Origin: Amoeboradix gromovi X-113
Taxonomy: Eukaryota; Fungi; Sanchytriomycota
DNA: 32,000 nucleotides
Direction: 5' to 3'
NCBI GenBank assembly: GCA_018985225.1
Contig: JADGIF010000006.1
Location: forward strand, 1 to 32,000
Part shown: piece after piece, positions 5,825-32,000 of the stretch
Numbering within the stretch: position 1 is the first letter of the stretch
Layout of the letters: each line of letters starts with the position of its first letter
Position numbers and translations under genes: made by a program
Notes under the pieces: generated by a model
What the model was told of the DNA's origin: nothing
What the model saw: the letters and a program-made list of their open reading frames with translations, nothing else
Databases searched by the model: none

Positions 5825-5966
5825 TTTACAATACAAGCGACTCTAATGAAACCCAATGTGGAGACATGAAAAAACATAAATTTGAAGTGGAGAGCGAGCA
5901 CACGGCAACAATGGCGTATAACAGCATGTATACTTACTCGATCCAGTCTTAGGTGTGGAAGCATGA
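5825..5966 (+). mobile_element. Heavily decayed IS607/Fanzor2 remnant (copy F): Zn-finger/RuvC-III end plus start of right-end scaffold
   Basis: The sequence ctctaatgaaacccaatgtggagac...gaagtggagagcgagcacacggcaaca...tactcgatccagtcttagg.gtggaagcatga aligns by eye with the KKPNLE..EVDRDHTAARN..ttcaatcccgcctcagggtagtgaaagcgtga region of the other copies. Confidence 0.6.
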
Positions 5967-5967
5967 T

Positions 5968-6190
5968 GCGGGATTGAATAAGAATACACATTAGATTACT
6001 AGTAAGTGCTTTATTACATTCAACTGACGTCTTCTCTCTTTACATTTGAATTTCAAATGTTTTTTGATTGCTTAATGAGACATTCTTGATATACATCTAG
6101 TTTTCCCATTCTTGCAACCGTTTCTCAAAGTCAACGATGGGTGTATACCATATTTACTTTTTATTTCTTTAGATCTGATATATTCAGGTT
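5968..6190 (-). mobile_element. Decayed IS607/Fanzor2 remnant (copy G): TnpA HTH fused to Fanzor2 fragment
   Basis: The minus strand reads KPEYIRSKEIKSKYGIHPSLTLRNGCKNGKTRCIS (MerR-like HTH), then SH*AIKKHLKFKCKER../VECNKALTS. It ends in cttattcaatcccgc, which matches the other copies. Confidence 0.75.
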
Positions 6191-6752
6191 TGCGGTTTAG
6201 AAACACATAAGGGACATCAAATATAAAAACTGGACTAACTTTCTGTAACAGCTTGGAACATTATTTCAGTTTTATTAATTTATGGATTTAAGAGGCGAGT
6301 GGACATTGAGCTAGTTGCGGAGTTGACGAGTATAAAAGGAAAATAAATATTCTGTACAGCTTTTCTCTTACTCTATCATCCAATCTTTTTCAAATAAAAT
6401 ATCACTATTACACTTCAAAGAAATAGATAAGAGTAATGATGTTAGTATAGCATTAAATGAAATGAAGAAAGAGTACCGTCCAAGAAAATGCACCTTTTGC
6501 TTAGATGCTCAAAGACCTCATATATTTGAACGAGATTCAGGGTCTTCTACTTTTATTTTGAAAAGAGGAATACAATCAATGAAAGAAAATTGGTATAATA
6601 GAAGATCTTTTATCAATGATAGCATTTCCTCCGTATGGTGCACCTTTAAAAACGAGTTAGTCTGGTTTTATATTTGGTGTCCCAAATCTAGCAGATTTAA
6701 TTAAAAATGTAAATAGGAATATTAATAAAAGGCTTACAGCTAATTTAAATAC

Positions 6753-10038: not shown

Positions 10039-10559
10039 AGCTTCTTCATTTTGTTGAATAAATTATTTATCGAGAACTAGCACGCATTTTATCTTAACGC
10101 GAATTTTCCAATAGGTTGAATGCTCGAAATTCTTCCTTTTCACAAACAGTACACGGAATGAATGGATTTATCCCGAATATTTTAGATTTAAAGAAATAAG
10201 TAGCAACATCATCTAATATACTTATCATCGTTCAATAAGAGCCAGGTGATAAGTAACTTGTGGAGCAAGGTCGCAAGAAAAACGCTTGAAGTTCAAGTGC
10301 AAGCTGAGAAAGACGATGGGCAAATATAATAAAGTATTAGTAGTCAGACATGTAAAAGGTGTGGTACTCTAAAGAAGAACAATTTAGAAACCACATCTGT
10401 ACAAATTGTCATTGGTATACATAAAGTATATGCATCCTAGTTCAATCCCGCCTCAGGGTAGTGAAAGCGTGAGCAATCACTGCAACGGATCATCTAGCAT
10501 TACAGGTTTCTCTGTAGAATTTCTAGATCTTCTCGGAAGACAGGACTTTTAACGAGGAG
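10039..10559 (+). mobile_element. Non-autonomous IS607/Fanzor2 element, copy A (both ends present)
   Basis: The left end is ACAG|cttc..ttgaataaattatttatcgagaa. Coding remnants read PEYFRFKEISS, PGDK*L, KRLKFKCK and SSQTCKRCGTLKKNNLET..CTNCH. The right end is ...ggacttttaacgaggag. Confidence 0.85.
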
Positions 10560-10577: not shown

Positions 10578-10767
10578 CAATACTTGTTGACAAAGCCAGT
10601 AGAACCTTAAATTCCTGTATCTGTAGATCCCAATTGAATCCAACATGCTCTCATGCTTTTTTCTCAAGTCAAAGAAAGTTCAGAATATGTTCACATCAAA
10701 ACTTAGACAGTTGATAGGCCTTTACGCAAGTGAAAGGACTATTTGGCAACGTTTAAAATCTTTTTGG

Positions 10768-13700
10768 CACTCTGTAGTCTGGATGCTTCAGCACTGGAGA
10801 CTCGCATAAAGAGCTTTTCAGCTTGTCAAATGCTTCCTGACATGCGTCTGACCATTGGAACCTCGCATTCTTTGATATCAGCTTGGACAACGGACTGGCT
10901 ATATGTGCAAAGCGATACACAAAGTTGCGATAGTACGATGCCATTCCCAGGAATCTTCTGACTCCTCGCACTGTAGTTGGTGGTCGCATATCTCTGATTG
11001 CACTAACCTTTGCATTATCCACTTCGATACCCTTGTCACTGACAACATAGCCAAGATAGTTTATACGTTGCATGCCAATGCTGCACTTCTTTGCTCTCAG
11101 CTTGAGACTTGCACTTGTAAGCTTCTTGAATACGCTATCCATCACTTGGAGTAGCTCTTCCATATCTCTTGCATAGATGAGTATGTCATCCAGATATCAG
11201 CACATTTGACATACTGTGGACTAGTCTGTCCATCATTCGTTGGAATGTAGCAGGTGCAGTCTTCAGTCCAAAAGGCATTACTGTGAACTCGTACAGACCC
11301 AATGGTGTCACAAATGCCGTTTTCTCAACATCTGCACTGTGAATCGGTATCTGCCAGTATCCTGCTGCTAGGTCTAGCTTAGCAAAGTACTTGGCACCCT
11401 TCATCTTGGATAGACACTAGTCTATATTTGGCAGCGGATACTTGTCAGACTTGGTGTGCTGATTCAGCTTCCGATAATCCACACAGAATCTCCAGCTTTT
11501 ATCGATTTTGGGCACTAGTCTACTGGACTGGCATAGCCAGACTGACTGGGTCTGATAATCCCTAAGGACAGCATCTTGTCGATCTCTTCCTCGACCACAT
11601 GTCTCTGTGCCATGCTCAACCGATAGGGCTTGGAACTCACTACTGTTCCATCTGTTACTATCCTATGCGAGACAGCTGTAGTAGTAGACGCACCTCTTCC
11701 TTCATTCTCAAAGTAGCCAAACATGTAGCCATGCTTGTTGATGAACCTGTTGATGCTATCTTTGTCCTTGCTAGACAAGGACGGCTCAACATTAACCTCC
11801 TGTGCTGATCCATGCAAGATCTCGAAGCTCATTGAGGTCTTGGCTACAAGCGGGTCTAACTCAATGTCAGAAGAGTAATAAGTAGTAAATCTTTTAATAG
11901 ATTTGAAGCTTTCCAGCTTCTCGTTGAATGCATCACTCATACGCGCAGCACCGAGACTGACCAGAGCCTCTTTTTGGCTGCAGCTTAGTGAGATGGGCAT
12001 TCCAGCGATCCAGACTAGATCCTGCTCTCTGTCCAAGCGAATCTTCAGCTGATCTTGTCCGTCAATACCTAGCAAGCATTCTGGCACGAGGTCTTTGAAC
12101 ACTAGGAACTTGACCGGAACAGCTTCCATATGCTTGTGGAACTTCATGAGTATGCGCACCACCTCAGGTGCCTTGACCTTTTGCATATGCTTGACACCTG
12201 CTTGCTCAGCAAATTCCAGTGATATGCAATTCGTATCAGCACCGCTGTCAATGGTTACTGGAATACTTGTGAGTCCAACAACTGCCATAACCGTTGATGA
12301 CTTGTTAGTTCTTGTAAACTTAACTTCCTCTTCCAACAGCGTAATTGCACCTACTCGCGTAGATCTGCAATCTTTGGCATAATGACCTGGTTTGTTGCAT
12401 TTGAAGCAGACCAGTGCTTGGGTGCTACCTTGGTTGCTGCGATAGTTTGGTCTTCTGAAATTGGAAGTACTGGATTCATAGACTTTTCTCTCAGAGACCT
12501 GTCTTTCCGGGTTACTCGTACCCAAATGAGGTTTGAAACGCTTTCTTGATCCTTGTTCAGGATCAATCTTTCGTCGAAATGAATTGTGAAAGTCTTGAGT
12601 GACATCCTCATAGATCACAGCATCCTGATAGACCTTCTTGATGTCTGTGGATTCCTCAGATGCCAGCTTCTCTTTGATGCTATCACTATTCAATCCATGT
12701 GTAAAGATAGCCACAGCAAGGTCTGAACTGATTAGCTCAAACTCTTTACCATGTCTTTCACGTGCCATGCCATTTACGCGGCTCATCTTCTTAGACAAGT
12801 AATGGTAGTATCCTGTTATCTTCTAATTCTTTCCTTGTCGGGCACTGCACAAGTCTTGGATAGACTTCATGTATGCACCCGGTTGGCGGAACTCTCTTAG
12901 AAGCAGGCTCTTCAGTTCCTCGTAGTTGGAGCTGTCTCCCTCTGTTAGCACCATAAATGCTCGACCTCGCACGCTGTTGCCAAGCACATAGGCCTTCTCA
13001 GCCGAGCTCAGGTTATGGGGCTTTAGTAGAAACTCTAACTGGTGGAGCCATTCATTAATGCCAATAGATTCGCTTCCAGTAAACTTGTTTCCAAAAGCAT
13101 TTAGGATCTGCATCAAGATCTTGTATCTTAACTGGTGCAGTGTATTCTGGTTGCTCTTGATGGGTGTCTGAGTGTCATCGAAACTAATACCCAAGGCATT
13201 GTCTCTTGCTAGCTCAGAGTTTAATGGATTATCTGATTGTTCTTGCTTTTGTGGCTCCTTGATTTCTTTCTCTGGAATTTCAGCGAGTGCTACTACCCTC
13301 GCTACCATGTTATGGTCCTCACTAGGGTCTGGAGAGGTTTGGTTCGAATGCGGTGAAGTTGCGTTAGAATTCATAAGTTCTTTATTGAGGGCATCGCTCT
13401 CTTTTATAGCCAACGATCTGCTATCATTGGTTGAGCGATATTAATGTGCTGTTAAATGATTGATCTACATATCTTGCACCAATCTTACTCAGTTATCTCT
13501 GACAAATAGTAAATCTCTCATTTACATGAGATCATGCTGTTTGTTCACCAATCAGCCAGAGCCATACTCACAACAGTTTGGATGTTCTGAATTCTGGAAT
13601 CATCAGCACAAGAGTTCTTCTTCCCAATGAGTAGATCAACTTCTTGTTTGGAATAGAGCAGTTTCCTCTTCTGTTATGCGTGTAGCTACCATCTCCATAA

Positions 13701-13888: not shown

Positions 13889-14020
13889 AAAATCAGTAGT
13901 TACCGTACAAATCTAAAATAAAGACTGGATGAAAGGGCAAAAAAATAGCTGTACAGAATATTTATTTTTGAAATTTCGATACAAATTGTCTAGTCTAGTT
14001 TTTACAGAGCATGTCCCAGA

Positions 14021-14382
14021 TGTTACTTCTAATCTACATGTCTTTCTGTGTTTCGTTACAGACTGAAGAGGCTCTATCCTCTAGTTTTGCCATACTTTTA
14101 TAATTCTAATGCGCGATTAATAAGCCAAGAGTGGCTGAAAGTTTTAAAGTACATACATTCCAAAGTATTATAGGGTTTAAGAATGTGTCTTATGCCCCTA
14201 GATTGAAGGCAGCTTTATCCAATCGTTTACAATGGCATTAGTTCTAGAATAAACTTCTGCTCTGTAGAGTTAATGCTTCCAGCAGTTCATCCCGGTTGGT
14301 CAAAAATTAGGCTAGTGACTACAGACCCGAAACATATACATCACTATTGATCTCACCTTGGGCTTGCAATCACTTTATTACA
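14021..14382 (-). repeat. Possible 5' LTR of the gypsy element
   Basis: The minus strand begins TGTAAT, contains TATAAAAG and ends GTAACA followed by TCTGG (PBS-like TGG). No second LTR is present to confirm it. Confidence 0.25.
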
Positions 14383-15363: not shown

Positions 15364-15806
15364 ATAAACAATTTGATGAATTATTTGACTCCTCTATGCA
15401 GTCCTGATTTCATAGAGAAACTGAAAGGCAGTTTATTGCATTAATTGCTCACGCCTCCATTAGCCTGTGGTAGTATAAAAACAAATGCACACTTTCAAAT
15501 TTATATTTTTCACTGCCTTAAGGTCTTTATCTACTTCCTAATAAGCTTTCAACGTTTTGAATAACTTGGTTGTGAAAGAAGTCTTCAGATATAGTATCTA
15601 ATTATCGGCCAATATCCTATTTTTCCTCATCACACGTAACCCTTGTAGTTAAGATAACCTCTGTTGAGTAAAACGTGGAAATACCAAACAACTGTTAGAT
15701 AATCGATTTTCTAGCATTGAGAACCATTTTGCAGACTGTTTTACTAGTGATTATGTTTACTAGTTAATTGCGTTAATTTGACATTTTTGGCTGTGGTCAT
15801 TTGTAA

Positions 15807-15947
15807 TAGATGACAGAGTACCGACTCCTCATTAAAAGTCCTGATTTCCGAGAAAATCGAGAATCTCCACGGAGAAACTAATGCTATATCTCCGTTACAG
15901 TGATTGCTGACGCTTTCACTGCCCTTAGGCGGGATTGAATAAGGATG
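15807..15947 (-). ncRNA. Candidate omegaRNA of copy B (guide TCGGTACTCTGTCATCTA)
   Basis: The same scaffold is present as in copies A, C and E, including an ACGGAGA/TCTCCGT stem. Confidence 0.55.
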
Positions 15948-16504
15948 TAGATACTTGATGTATATGTTCCTTGTTGCCATATGATCTCTATCTATCTTCA
16001 AATGACACTTTGTACAGGTTCAGGTTTCTAAACTGGTTTTCTTCAGGGTACCATACCTCGTACATGGCATCGAATATGTTCCTTGGTGCCATGTGGTCCA
16101 TGTCCACTTCCAAACGACACTATGTACATGAATAGCTCTCCAAATTGGGTTTCTTTAGATTTCCACATATTGTACATCTTTGAATAGTAAATGATTCATT
16201 ACATTCGATTATCGTCTTTCCTCTTTGTTTACATTTAAACTTCAAGCGTTACTTGAATAAATTGTACAGATATCGCTGTCTAGGTGTCGAAAGACATCTA
16301 ATTCTTCCACATTTGGACCAGTTCCTCAGTGTTGAAGAATGTATGCTGTACCTACTAGTTATTTCTTTAGAATTGATTTACAATTTGTGAAAAGGAAGAA
16401 TATCAAGTATTCAAGCTAGTAGAAAAATCTGGAAAAGTCATGAAATTATACAAAAATGCATACAAATTCGCGATAAATGATATATTCAAGAAAACAATCG
16501 AGCT
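15825..16504 (-). mobile_element. Non-autonomous IS607/Fanzor2 element, copy B (both ends present)
   Basis: On the minus strand the order is ACAG|ctcgattgttttcttgaat, then TnpA HTH SKEITSRYSIHSSTLRNWSKCGRIRCLSTP, then Fanzor2 LFK*RLKFKCKQRGKTIIECNESFTIQRCTICG. A duplicated Zn finger, KIDRDHMATRNIYIKY and the right end ttttaatgaggag follow. Confidence 0.9.
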
Positions 16505-16582
16505 GTTATTAGTTGCAAAATCCTGTAAAAAAAGCCTATTTGAGCAATAAAATTCATTTATAGCTATAAATAATTTATTTAT

Positions 16583-16981
16583 TTAAAGCCGATAGCTACT
16601 TATCAGCTTGTATACTTGCTGCACTTCGCTCACGCGAATTCTAATGGACTCCAAAGTTGTCAAAACTTGAAGCTCCATGTTAATTAGTTCCACACATGGA
16701 ATGACTAGCACAGCAGATATATATTTATTAGGGATGGTGTTGTAATTCAACTTATTGACCAGCAGGTAGCAAGCTAAAAACACATCTGACAATTTTCCAT
16801 CCAAGGAATTGCCAAGTCTTTTCAGATATATGATAGTTTGGCAGAATTGAATTGGGTTGATTCTAAGAACTTGGACTGCGTATGATATTCGTTCAACATC
16901 TATTGGGGTGAACTGTAAATATTGAGAAACTATGGGCAATGCTCTCAGCTGCACAAACATGGCATTCATGATCTCTTGCAT
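16583..16981 (-). CDS. Small PHO80/Pcl-like cyclin-fold protein
   Basis: IIYLKRL...VFLACYLLVNK...N...ELINMELQVLTTL matches the cyclin-box pattern of Pho80/Pcl cyclins. Confidence 0.6.
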   Translation of the reverse strand: MQEIMNAMFVQLRALPIVSQYLQFTPIDVERISYAVQVLRINPIQFCQTIIYLKRLGNSLDGKLSDVFLACYLLVNKLNYNTIPNKYISAVLVIPCVELINMELQVLTTLESIRIRVSEVQQVYKLISSYRL

Positions 16982-17932: not shown

Positions 17933-18892
17933 ATGTTAATACAATTAGCTCTTATTCACAGTGTCACTTGTACTTTTGGTCATGCGAGAGCTGAATCAAG
18001 CTGCAAATCCAGAAGTTCTAAATGGGGATTTTTTCGTAACTCAATTCATAAACCTGTGTTCCAAAAACAGGTTCACCAGAGAGGCCCTAGTGCAGAAGTC
18101 GACCCGTTGAATGGGTCATCAAAAAAGGAAGTTTATAAAATACTAAACAATTATTTTTCTGGATCTCGCATCAGTTCAGACGCCAGCGATAAGGAGGCCA
18201 ATGATATCTACGGATACTCCAAAGGCATAAATTTCTCAGAATTAGAATGTTTTACGCCTAAAGATAGTAAAGATAGAAGTCCATGTCCTTTTATTAACAG
18301 TTTGGCTAATTGCCATTTAATCAATTTCAGTGGTAAGGACATTCCCTTACAGCAGCTTAAAGAAGCTGCTATGCATATTGGCAATGTATTCATGGGCGGT
18401 ATTGATAAGGTTGTTGACACGTTTAAGCCCGTTGCTAAAGATAAGGATGGAAAACTTGTTATTGACTTGAATCAGCTTAATGTTCATCGTGATGCTGATC
18501 ATCTACATGCAGTTGAGCATGATTATTCGCTTACCAGGTTAAATTATTTCGAGGGAGACAACCACACACCAAATAACAATTTGATAGAGCAGCTAATGCA
18601 ATTTGCTACCGACGGCTACTTGACACTAAACCAACTAATAAAAGCAAGAACATTGAGGATGCGGCAAACTCGGGCTGATAGTAGACATAAAGCTTTCAAC
18701 GATTGGCTTCCCTCAAGTGTGGAACTTGTATTCTTAGCAACTACATTGGGCAGAGACGATAGAATAAGTGTCCAGGATGCTTATTCATTTTTAAAGTTAG
18801 AGCGATTTCCAAAGAACTGGAGCCCTCGCCCAAAAGTTTTGGGGCAGTTCGAATTTATCAGAAAGTTGGCATATATTTACGTTAAGGAATGA
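17933..18892 (+). CDS. Secreted heme-thiolate peroxidase (chloroperoxidase/unspecific peroxygenase family)
   Basis: It has a signal-peptide-like N-terminus, RSPCPFINSLAN (proximal Cys PCP motif), EHDYSLTR and a C-terminal ERFPKNW. Confidence 0.9.
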   Translation: MLIQLALIHSVTCTFGHARAESSCKSRSSKWGFFRNSIHKPVFQKQVHQRGPSAEVDPLNGSSKKEVYKILNNYFSGSRISSDASDKEANDIYGYSKGINFSELECFTPKDSKDRSPCPFINSLANCHLINFSGKDIPLQQLKEAAMHIGNVFMGGIDKVVDTFKPVAKDKDGKLVIDLNQLNVHRDADHLHAVEHDYSLTRLNYFEGDNHTPNNNLIEQLMQFATDGYLTLNQLIKARTLRMRQTRADSRHKAFNDWLPSSVELVFLATTLGRDDRISVQDAYSFLKLERFPKNWSPRPKVLGQFEFIRKLAYIYVKE

Positions 18893-20984: not shown

Positions 20985-21210
20985 AGTTCGATTGCTTTCT
21001 TGAATAAATCATTTATCGCGAATTAGTATGCATTTTTGTATAATTTCAAGACTTTTCCAGATTTTTCCAATAGCTTAAATACTCGATATTCTTCCTTTTT
21101 GCAAATGGTAAATCAATTCTAAAGAAATAACTAGCAGGTACAGCATACATTCTTCAACACTGAGGAACTGGTGCAAGCATGGAAGAATTAGATATCTTTC
21201 GACGCCAGGG
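20985..21210 (+). mobile_element. IS607/Fanzor2 element copy D (left end plus TnpA HTH only)
   Basis: It is the reverse complement of about 16280-16506, begins ACAG|ttcgattgctttcttgaat, and translates SKEITSRYSIHSSTLRNWCKHGRIRYLSTPG. Confidence 0.85.
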
Positions 21211-27222: not shown

Positions 27223-27526
27223 TTCTCAACCTAACGGTCTAGAGCTCGCATGATATATACACGTGTTATGTCCAATCAAACAGCTTTCCCCTTGCAACTA
27301 ATACCTTGTGCATTAATTTAATGATAATTATAGCCGAAAGCAAGCAAAAGGTCAAGTGAACTGTTTCTTTGTCGCGCCTCTTATTGTTTGCTTTAAACTT
27401 AGTGCCGCAGATATCCTGAAATATGTTCATATGTTCACTATGTTTCAAATTTTTAATGTGTCTGGATTTAGCAACATGCTACGCAATTAGAGATGTGTAT
27501 ATAAGAACTTCAGAATCCGATTGCAG

Positions 27527-27772
27527 ATGATCCCGAACCACATTAAAGCCGTTCAACAATCAATGTCTAAGCTGAAAAATGAAAATATCGAATTGCGGAA
27601 AAAAGCTTTAATAATGACTACCCTTGACAGAATGATGCTGGAACATCCGGTACAATATTGTAAGGCCATTTATACCAAGAATTATAAGAATATACTTTGT
27701 AAGATGATTAAATGCGGAGTCGCAAGTGAAAAATCAATATTGCACGATAAAGTAGTAAATCTTATTCTGTAG
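27527..27772 (+). CDS. Small protein with SERTA-like motif
   Basis: QSMSKL..ELRKKALIMTTLDRM..EHP is shared with the ORF at 30602-30832. Confidence 0.5.
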   Translation: MIPNHIKAVQQSMSKLKNENIELRKKALIMTTLDRMMLEHPVQYCKAIYTKNYKNILCKMIKCGVASEKSILHDKVVNLIL

Positions 27773-29919: not shown

Positions 29920-30064
29920 TTTTATATTTTCTTTGTCCTCCTCCTTAAAAGTCCAGATTTCCGAGAAAATCGAGAAATTCCACAGAAAAACTAGCAATGC
30001 TAGATCTCAGTTACAGTGATTGCTCACGCTTTCACTACCCTGAGGCGGGATTGAATAAGGATGC
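29920..30064 (-). ncRNA. Candidate omegaRNA of copy C (guide GACAAAGAAAATATAAAA)
   Basis: The conserved scaffold contains GTGA-GCAA-TCAC and CTAGC-ATT-GCTAG hairpins. Confidence 0.55.
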
Positions 30065-30504
30065 ATATACTTGATGTATATGTTCCTTGCTGCCATATGA
30101 TCTCTATCTACCTTCAAATGACACTTTGTACAGGTTCAGGTTTCTAAATTAGTTTTCTTTAGAGTACCATACCTCGTACATGGCATCGAATTTGTTCCTT
30201 GGTGCCATGTGGTCCATGTCCACTTCCAAACCACACTATGTACATGAGTAGCTCTCCAAATTGGTTTTCTTTAGAGTTCCACATACTGTACATGGCATCG
30301 AATTTCCGTGTTTGGACCAGCTTATCAGTCTGAGACGAATCTATGCTGTACCTATTAGTTATTTATTTAAAATTGATTTACCGTTTGCGAAGAGGAAGAA
30401 TATCTAGTGTTTAAGCCATTAGAAAAATCTGGAAAAGTCTTGAAATGATACAAAAATATATACAAATTCGCGATAAATGATTTATTCAAGAAAATAGTCA
30501 AGCT
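29938..30504 (-). mobile_element. Non-autonomous IS607/Fanzor2 element, copy C (both ends present)
   Basis: It is highly similar to copy B, including the duplicated Zn finger and KVDRDHMAARNIYIKY. The left end is ACAG|cttgactattttcttgaat and the right end is ttttaaggaggag. Confidence 0.9.
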
Positions 30505-30601
30505 GTCACGATATCATGAATCTATCAATTTTCTATCAGCCAATCAACTGTCTCATCATTTCTGTTTTCAAGAGCACCTCCTTGAAAATCTCAATTTGGA
30601 A

Positions 30602-30832
30602 ATGATTTGTTGGTCGGATCTATTAGAAAACTCTGATAGTTTCCCGCCATGCAAAGACGAAGTAGAACAGGTTCATTCTATTCAAGTGAGTCTATTAAAG
30701 TTAGCTCGTCCAAGGCATCGAGAGGATTTATTAAAACAAATTCTAATAAGTAAAACCCTGGACAGGATGTCATCCGAACATCCAGAACTAATGAAATATC
30801 ACTACCTCGGTCACAAGTTTAAAATTAAGTAA
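30602..30832 (+). CDS. Small protein with SERTA-like motif
   Basis: The sequence reads QVSLLKL.....EDLLKQILISKTLDRM..EHP. Confidence 0.5.
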   Translation: MICWSDLLENSDSFPPCKDEVEQVHSIQVSLLKLARPRHREDLLKQILISKTLDRMSSEHPELMKYHYLGHKFKIK

Positions 30833-31271: not shown

Positions 31272-31529
31272 CTAGAATTTATTTACATTTTCTTTAAAGT
31301 TGGCTAACAGTTTTAATCTTTCCGAACTTACCATGTTCGGATATACAGCCAACATAAACTCAATTGGGTAGCACCTTTCGATAAAACCTAACAACTGCCT
31401 CGCAAGCACCCGATTTCTTAGAACTTCTGTCTGCTTTTGTTTCGTATTTTCAACTATTCTGTGCACTAGTTCCCATTCATTCTTCTTTTGTGCTGTATGC
31501 GCTGGTAAGAGAGTCGGCTGCTGGTACAT
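31272..31529 (-). CDS. Small hypothetical protein, distant SERTA-like motif
   Basis: EVLRNRVLARQLLGFIERCYPIEF..AVY loosely parallels ELRKKALIMTTLDRMMLEHPVQY..AIY. Confidence 0.4.
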   Translation of the reverse strand: MYQQPTLLPAHTAQKKNEWELVHRIVENTKQKQTEVLRNRVLARQLLGFIERCYPIEFMLAVYPNMVSSERLKLLANFKENVNKF

Positions 31530-31737
31530 TTTCAATTTTTTGATCAGTTCTTCTTTAATAAAATCGCAATATGATTGATTGGACTAGAATTTTAAACTTG
31601 TACCAATTGGTCGGTGTTGAAATTAATTAAAAAGAACCCTGAAAAATCAATTAATTTAGCTACGAGTTAAATGGAATAAGCCGTTTTATTGTTGTATTCG
31701 CTGTATCGCTCCATATTAGTTCTAAATTAATTGTTAA

Positions 31738-31882
31738 AAGAGACCCAATACAAGACTTCTCGTTAAAAGTCCTGATTTCCGAGAGAATCGAGAATTTCCA
31801 CAAAGAACTAGCAGTGCCAGATGCTCCGTTACAGTGATCGCTCACGCTTTCACTACCCTGAGGCGGGATTGAATAAGGATGC
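31738..31882 (-). ncRNA. Candidate omegaRNA of copy E (guide TCTTGTATTGGGTCTCTT)
   Basis: The scaffold carries a GTGA-GCGA-TCAC variant hairpin. Confidence 0.55.
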
Positions 31883-32000
31883 AGATACTTGTATATGTTC
31901 CTTGCTGCCGTATGGTCTCTATCTATCTTCAAATGACAATTGGTATAGGTTTAGATTTCTAAGTTGGTTTTCTTTATAGTACCACACCTTGTACATGTCT
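31756..32000 (-). mobile_element. IS607/Fanzor2 element copy E (right end; runs off the window)
   Basis: The minus strand reads TCTRCGTIKKTNLEI*TYTNCHLKIDRDHTAARNIYKY, followed by the scaffold and the right end ttttaacgagaag. Confidence 0.9.

Follow-up and report, generated by a model that had tools for sequence, protein, structure and literature searches.

Between the genes of a 32,000-nt stretch of the fungus Amoeboradix gromovi X-113 (contig JADGIF010000006.1, positions 1 to 32,000), referred to here as the window, lies a family of short related segments, and the question is whether they represent a working RNA-guided nuclease transposon or the remains of one. A preliminary description made from the sequence alone had listed seven segments, read their left parts as the HTH of an IS607 TnpA and their right parts as the zinc-finger end of Fanzor2, and spoken of an RNA-guided nuclease system. 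In our analysis it is highly probable that a eukaryotic element of the IS607 type, about 1.9 kb long and consisting of TnpA and Fanzor2, gave rise to them by internal deletion, and that these now dead and non-autonomous derivatives multiplied in the A. gromovi nucleus.

Copies in the window and their anatomy

Self-BLASTN and nhmmer across the 32-kb window recovered all seven segments, which amount to about 2.6 kb, or 8% of the window (Table 1). The copies B, F, C, E and G are each found at E <= 2e-72, with 74-92% identity over the shared ends of these five close copies, and a 12-mer from the scaffold described below occurs four times in the window as opposed to 0.3 expected occurrences. The other two, A1 (nhmmer E 7e-7 against F) and A2 (matched at 5998-6204, minus strand, E 2e-12), form a separate diverged subfamily, as their left end is unlike that of the close copies; the left end of A2 resembles the sequence upstream of the Fanzor2 protein P0030 in contig L001 (90.6% over 32 nt). 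That each segment has a left and a right part holds only in part, as E has the left part only, A1 the right part only, and G is cut by the edge. Absent from the earlier list were an eighth copy, H, and the tandem duplication of 112 bp that B and F contain. In copy H, the TnpA remnant extends to the region of the catalytic motif (tblastn E 0.001), a Fanzor tail is present and the right end finishes in GAGGAG. A candidate remnant of its left end at about 16503-16598 (minus strand; p 0.02-0.11, of weak significance) faintly suggests that copy B is probably nested at ACAG in the left end of this older copy. All copies are intergenic, with Chs7, zuotin, Lon, a UbiA-family prenyltransferase, a cap methyltransferase and ribosomal protein L11/L12 as neighbours. 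Of seven window proteins compared with EukProt, six are identical to entries there, and the GC content of the window agrees with the 36.3% published for the genome (PMC8371127), in keeping with nuclear DNA of A. gromovi.

The window holds several other features. Left-end-like sequences of a second IS607/Fanzor2 subfamily are present at 13920-14050 (plus strand) and 6207-6388 (minus strand) as well as in L001 (340-440), and a motif common to them occurs twice upstream of P0030 in L001. A decayed remnant of a Ty3/gypsy-like LTR retrotransposon with a zinc knuckle and a broken reverse transcriptase covers 10753-13413 (minus strand), a gene of the heme-thiolate peroxidase family (PF01328) lies at 17933-18892 (plus strand), and there are small ORFs at 27521-27772, 30596-30832 and 31272-31535, the first two of which are alike at the C-terminus.

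Table 1. Family members in the window and the parts of copy B.
Feature	Coordinates	Strand	Remarks
Copy B	15825..16502	-	678 bp; non-autonomous mini-element with IS607/Fanzor2 parts; self-BLASTN and nhmmer
Copy F	29938..30502	-	565 bp; deletion breakpoint unlike that of copy B; self-BLASTN
Copy C	10041..10559	+	519 bp; third deletion type; self-BLASTN and nhmmer
Copy E	20987..21208	+	Left half only; stops at CCAG internal to tnpA
Copy G	31756..32000	-	Right part; cut by window edge
A2	5964..6204	-	Diverged sister subfamily; TnpA HTH fused to Fanzor tail; right end lost
A1	5825..5966	+	Piece of a Fanzor tail, decayed; arranged tail-to-tail with A2
Copy H	15389..15824	-	Older, heavily decayed family member adjoining B on its downstream side; nhmmer E 6e-7
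B: target motif ACAG before left end	16503..16506	-	AG, putative crossover core; CAG, predicted TAM
B: left end, non-coding	16378..16502	-	About 125 bp; without TIR; 74-92% identity among B, E, F and C
B: N-terminal HTH remnant of IS607-type TnpA	16261..16377	-	tblastn with L003 TnpA, 55% identity
B: Fanzor2 remnant with 112-bp duplication unit 1, stop-bearing	16074..16257	-	PF07282 match
B: duplication unit 2, RuvC-III motif and Fanzor C-terminal tail	15832..16073	-
B: predicted omegaRNA scaffold core	15825..15933	-	Hairpin, pseudoknot, three stem-loops, AG core at end
B: right flank, predicted guide, copy-specific	15805..15824	-	Predicted from TnpB/Fanzor2 architecture

The HTH remnant of copy B matches intact IS607 TnpAs in tblastn (E 5e-13 and 5e-9) and a TnpA profile (iE 1e-6), with a weak match to NF033518, which confirms the earlier reading of the left peptide. 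The right part matches PF07282 at 16123-16248 (E 6e-7) and is 47-52% identical to P0141 and P0030, the best solved-structure match of the Fanzor fragments is the mimivirus Fanzor2 9B0L, and in copy B as well as in the genome fragments P0012 and P0014 the RuvC-II glutamate stands in a shifted position, six residues ahead of the zinc finger, which is a signature of Fanzor proteins. The right peptide was thus correctly placed as the Fanzor2 zinc-finger end. The peptides that had been reconstructed are real, although the position rendered as ‘FK(Q)RLK’ is a stop in B and an E residue in other genome copies.

From their sequence, each element is an internal deletion of an IS607 element of about 1.9 kb that kept the ends, the HTH and the zinc-finger tail. 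The order of tnpA before Fanzor is retained in B, C, F, A2 and H, and the deletions arose several times independently, with breakpoints differing among these five copies. RuvC-I is missing from every window copy, together with its DPG motif, which is present in the nearest full-length relatives P0141, P0030 and P0034; an intact catalytic domain of the serine recombinase is likewise lacking throughout, only H showing a decayed trace of it. The notion of a nuclease system within the window therefore does not hold. Copies B and F also have two stop codons in common. Since they share the duplication and these stops, yet have unrelated flanks, versions that were already dead moved in trans. Copy B is probably a recombinant, since its left part is longer but its junction inside the duplication is of the F type. 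An intron-forming reading of the elements was rejected, as a GT start is found on neither strand.

Deletion fusions of this kind also occur among the predicted proteins. P0015 from A. gromovi is an in-frame HTH-Fanzor fusion, and the cyanobacterial protein P0065 from Coleofasciculus, in which a deletion has fused TnpA and TnpB in frame, is a prokaryotic counterpart of the mini-elements. The element tail of P0019 (A. gromovi NODE_246) runs in frame into a host ORF resembling an RNA-binding protein, probably an artefact of ORF calling.

Ends, target motif and dispersal

The ends of the copies are precise. ACAG directly precedes the left ends of B, C, E and F (4/4, with a background of 0.4% per site), the right ends in the window terminate in GAG(G/A)AG, and the core AG is found in all copies and four relatives. 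In a comparison with 2,115 contigs of the source run, contigs diverge from copy B at 15824/15825 (35+47, right end) and at 16505/16507 (25+28, left end), and its flanks are single-copy with a depth of 18-23. No TIR was found when the ends of the copies were compared, nor a TSD beyond the shared AG dinucleotide, which could formally be a TSD of 2 bp. In F, a single 9-bp motif (n=1) stands at one end and, in inverted orientation, at the other, with no clear array of repeated TnpA-binding motifs. By analogy with known elements, CAG is predicted to be the TAM of the family. The core dinucleotide typical of IS607 is GG (PMC6188088, PMC13565253); however, one review states that ‘most’ IS607 elements finish in GG and gives AGGAG TAMs for some IS607 TnpBs (PMC13565253), so that an AG core marks a variant and does not exclude the elements from the IS607 family.

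Extrapolation from the density in the window gives about 2,000 copies or fragments in the genome, and a range from hundreds to low thousands is defensible. The summed read depth (about 1e5 as opposed to 20) was rejected as a measure of copy number because it adds overlapping contigs together. Repeats of this kind might also result from segmental duplication, contamination or amplification chimeras, as the genome was obtained by whole-genome amplification with heavy contamination (PMC8371127) and segmental duplication accounted for many eukaryotic IS607-like sequences (PMC3673617). This origin is very improbable here, given the sharp ends in unrelated single-copy flanks (depth 18-23), the location of copies between fungal genes such as those for Chs7, zuotin and the cap methyltransferase, and the distance of 8-26% between the copies.

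An intact relative and the predicted omegaRNA scaffold

An intact two-gene relative was found via the tail sequence, which led to the Fanzor2 P0141 encoded on the JGI contigs L005, L006 and L155. The element in L005 and L006 is 1,887 bp long with both genes intact. Its TnpA (214 aa) scores 172.7 bits against NF033518, the cut-off being 110, with IS607-type recombinases as the best structures, and its Fanzor2 (579 aa) is of the DPG type, overlaps tnpA and has ApmFz2 (9B0L) as the best structure. At independent sites, the relative follows ACAG or TCAG, begins with CT and finishes in GAGGAG; in L155 (1264-1845) it is inserted at TCAG in the tnpA of another copy. CAG also precedes the element in L003, and the overlap of tnpA and Fanzor is seen in L003 and L005. 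Joining the L006 flanks with a single AG yields a short open frame, which lends weak support to these ends. The existence of a two-gene relative with the same end rules bears out the earlier interpretation of the copies as non-autonomous, internally deleted TnpA and Fanzor2 derivatives.

In L005, the TnpA ORF (576-1220) is overlapped almost throughout by the frame of the Fanzor2 N-terminal extension (592-2331), and L003 is similar. The closest relative outside Amoeboradix is L004 (1-608), an ENA metagenome contig with a stop in its own zinc finger, which may come from another infested eukaryote. Virus-like neighbours lie beside the elements of L001 and L003, and judging from these sequences viral delivery of the family is plausible.

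The element search also gave EukProt fragments, and the 12 that were checked all belong to EP00835, Amoeboradix gromovi. In a quick C-terminal tree (126 columns, Fanzor1 rows left out, moderate support), the A. gromovi fragments cluster with L004 and P0141 (SH-aLRT 92), followed by P0030 and P0034 (90). The fragments lie inside the clade of pro-Fanzor and Fanzor2 but not in its cyanobacterial subclade, and they are separate from canonical TnpB, in agreement with the Fanzor2 affinity proposed at the outset.

The right end is predicted to hold an omegaRNA pseudoknot, a trait of Fanzor2 and TnpB. A right-end pseudoknot is the core of TnpB and Fanzor2 scaffolds and is absent from Fanzor1. About 105-110 nt from the right end lies a small hairpin whose loop is the complement of positions -7 to -3; in copy B these are the hairpin at 15922-15933 and the strand at 15827-15831. 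When four copies from the window are taken together with four relatives, 35 of 40 pseudoknot pairs form, as opposed to at most 21 of 40 in slid registers, and compensatory double changes occur in three of the five pseudoknot columns, with one more in the stem, in a structure drawn by eye from eight sequences only. No covariation was found among the window copies alone. Folding gives three more stem-loops, whose sequences are unrelated among B, L004 and L006 (z -2.7 to -3.4; B -3.4). The stop codon of the parent ORF lies about 7 nt ahead of the right end; the ORF being open that far, the scaffold core overlaps its tail. The scaffold has no match in Rfam, and its exact pattern is absent from the viral contigs searched. 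In the right ends of other Fanzor2 elements (L009, L012, L085 and more), a strand complementary to an upstream loop is seen by eye directly before the GG or TG core.

These features bear on a second origin, namely capture of Fanzor2 by a DDE cut-and-paste transposon, as with the Fanzor2* of molluscs and Chloropicon, in which the AG would be a TSD. Such Fanzor2* elements exist and AG stands at both junctions, but the copies have no TIR, the TnpA HTH lies immediately inside the left end, the TnpA of the intact relative scores above the curated IS607 cut-off, and, as is the case at IS607 ends, the terminal AG comes immediately after the strand that forms the pseudoknot. We therefore regard such a capture as very unlikely, and the IS607 origin is retained.

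An intact partner was sought in A. gromovi itself, as an autonomous parent had been suggested as a possibility elsewhere. The protein collections searched yielded neither a TnpA nor a Fanzor2 that was both cognate and intact: a representative search gave A. gromovi fragments only (99-213 aa), and two homologue searches, limited to 0.55-1.75 times the query length and with few candidates, gave no full-length EukProt Fanzor. P0201 (EukProt, 204 aa, NODE_221_length_13987, named in sanchytrid style) is a full-length IS607 TnpA (NF033518, 160 bits) of another family and was rejected as the parent TnpA, with 26-32% identity to the window HTH.

Could the system nevertheless be working, with a Fanzor2 still intact at another genomic site and the mini-elements as a selected repertoire of omegaRNA genes? 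The pseudoknot cores of C and F are intact, and functional ghost omegaRNAs have a precedent in SpuFz1 (PMC10432273). However, one pseudoknot pair is broken in each of B and G, no full-length cognate protein was found, and the guides have no CAG-adjacent match elsewhere in the window. Moreover, scaffold and dead zinc-finger remnant are equally diverged (87.6% and 87.5% pooled identity over four copies), so that selection on the scaffold is not seen. We consider this reading unlikely, and the same doubt applies to the broader proposal that A. gromovi keeps a working CAG-specific pair of TnpA and Fanzor2, by which mini-elements in their hundreds to thousands, each expressing a guide of host origin, are mobilised and kept. 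If such a pair existed, eukaryotes would have their first native model of serine-transposase transposition coupled to RNA-guided restorative homing on a genome scale. As no intact cognate nuclease was found in the protein collections searched and the scaffold is conserved no better than dead coding remnants, the family is more probably a fossil burst than a working system; all window copies are dead.

Proposed mechanism and comparison with known systems

By analogy with characterised IS607 elements (PMC6188088, PMC10690162, PMC13565253), a full-length copy would have supplied TnpA in trans, which would bind both ends, excise the element as a double-stranded circle via a crossover at the AG dinucleotide and insert it after CAG without target duplication. 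The parent Fanzor2 would load an omegaRNA whose scaffold comes from the right end and whose guide is formed by about 20 nt of the adjoining flank, and would cut vacated donor sites bearing a 5'-CAG TAM and a guide match, whereupon homologous repair would restore the element; filled sites finish in GAG instead of CAG and would therefore escape cutting. Because the mini-elements retain both ends and the scaffold, they could make use of both proteins. The internal deletions and mosaic copies would most probably stem from incomplete gap repair. Copy E may be a nested insertion that was later excised with the wrong pair of ends, which fits its stop at the internal CCAG of tnpA. Self-insertion is seen in L155 and is also probable, on slender grounds, for B within H.

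Neither eukaryotic elements with IS607 and Fanzor2 parts nor ghost copies that lack the nuclease are new in themselves; new are the scale of the nuclear amplification and the CAG/AG specificity in place of GG. Gilbert and Cordaux described 1-22 IS607-like sequences per eukaryote genome, often due to segmental duplication and with transposition not evidenced, and put forward the view that IS elements of prokaryotes do not proliferate in eukaryotes (PMC3673617). With about 8% of a 32-kb window consisting of IS607 debris with precise ends, this barrier can evidently be crossed on a large scale, and the copies provide clear sequence evidence that an IS607-type transposon has jumped inside a eukaryotic nucleus. 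Earlier surveys reported up to 122 Fanzor copies per genome. The paper on the A. gromovi genome (10.5 Mb, 36.3% GC), the reduced genome of a parasite of algae, does not contain the words ‘repeat...’ or ‘transpos...’ (PMC8371127), and no link between Fanzor and Amoeboradix was found in the literature searched. For the clade, the predictions are a CAG TAM, an AG core and a scaffold core that is compact at about 110 nt, the characterised Fanzor2 TAMs being GGG, CCG and TAG, and the intact metagenomic relative makes these predictions directly testable.

Like IS607EU, ISvMimi/ApmFz2 and ACa-1/2, the A. gromovi family has overlapping tnpA and Fanzor2 genes, no TIR or TSD, a shifted RuvC-II glutamate and, as predicted here, a right-end omegaRNA pseudoknot adjoining the guide. 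It differs from these elements (GGG/GG) in its CAG target and AG core, in a scaffold core inside the ORF tail as opposed to about 200 nt downstream, and in its hundreds to thousands of nuclear copies, of which all those in the window are deleted. The ghost copies of Spu-1 in Spizellomyces punctatus (PMC10432273) are likewise fungal, nuclease-less, about 550 nt long and equipped with ends, TAM and omegaRNA scaffold; however, Spu-1 is a Fanzor1 element with 30-nt inverted repeats, no pseudoknot, 134 ghosts and intact partners (PMC10432273), whereas the A. gromovi family derives from an IS607 element with a serine recombinase. The IS607-like sequences of Gilbert and Cordaux are also IS607-derived nuclear fragments in eukaryotes, in which the zinc ribbon is often kept (PMC3673617), whereas the A. 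gromovi copies are dispersed with precise ends and a target motif. In contrast to Fanzor2* and Fanzor1 elements, the family lacks TIRs and TSDs and contains an IS607 TnpA remnant. The elements of L005, L006 and L155, the closest intact relatives, share about 68% DNA identity in the tail, the CAG target, the CT start, the GAGGAG end and the pseudoknot with the A. gromovi mini-elements, but they are autonomous, 1,887 bp long and different in the sequences of their stem-loops.
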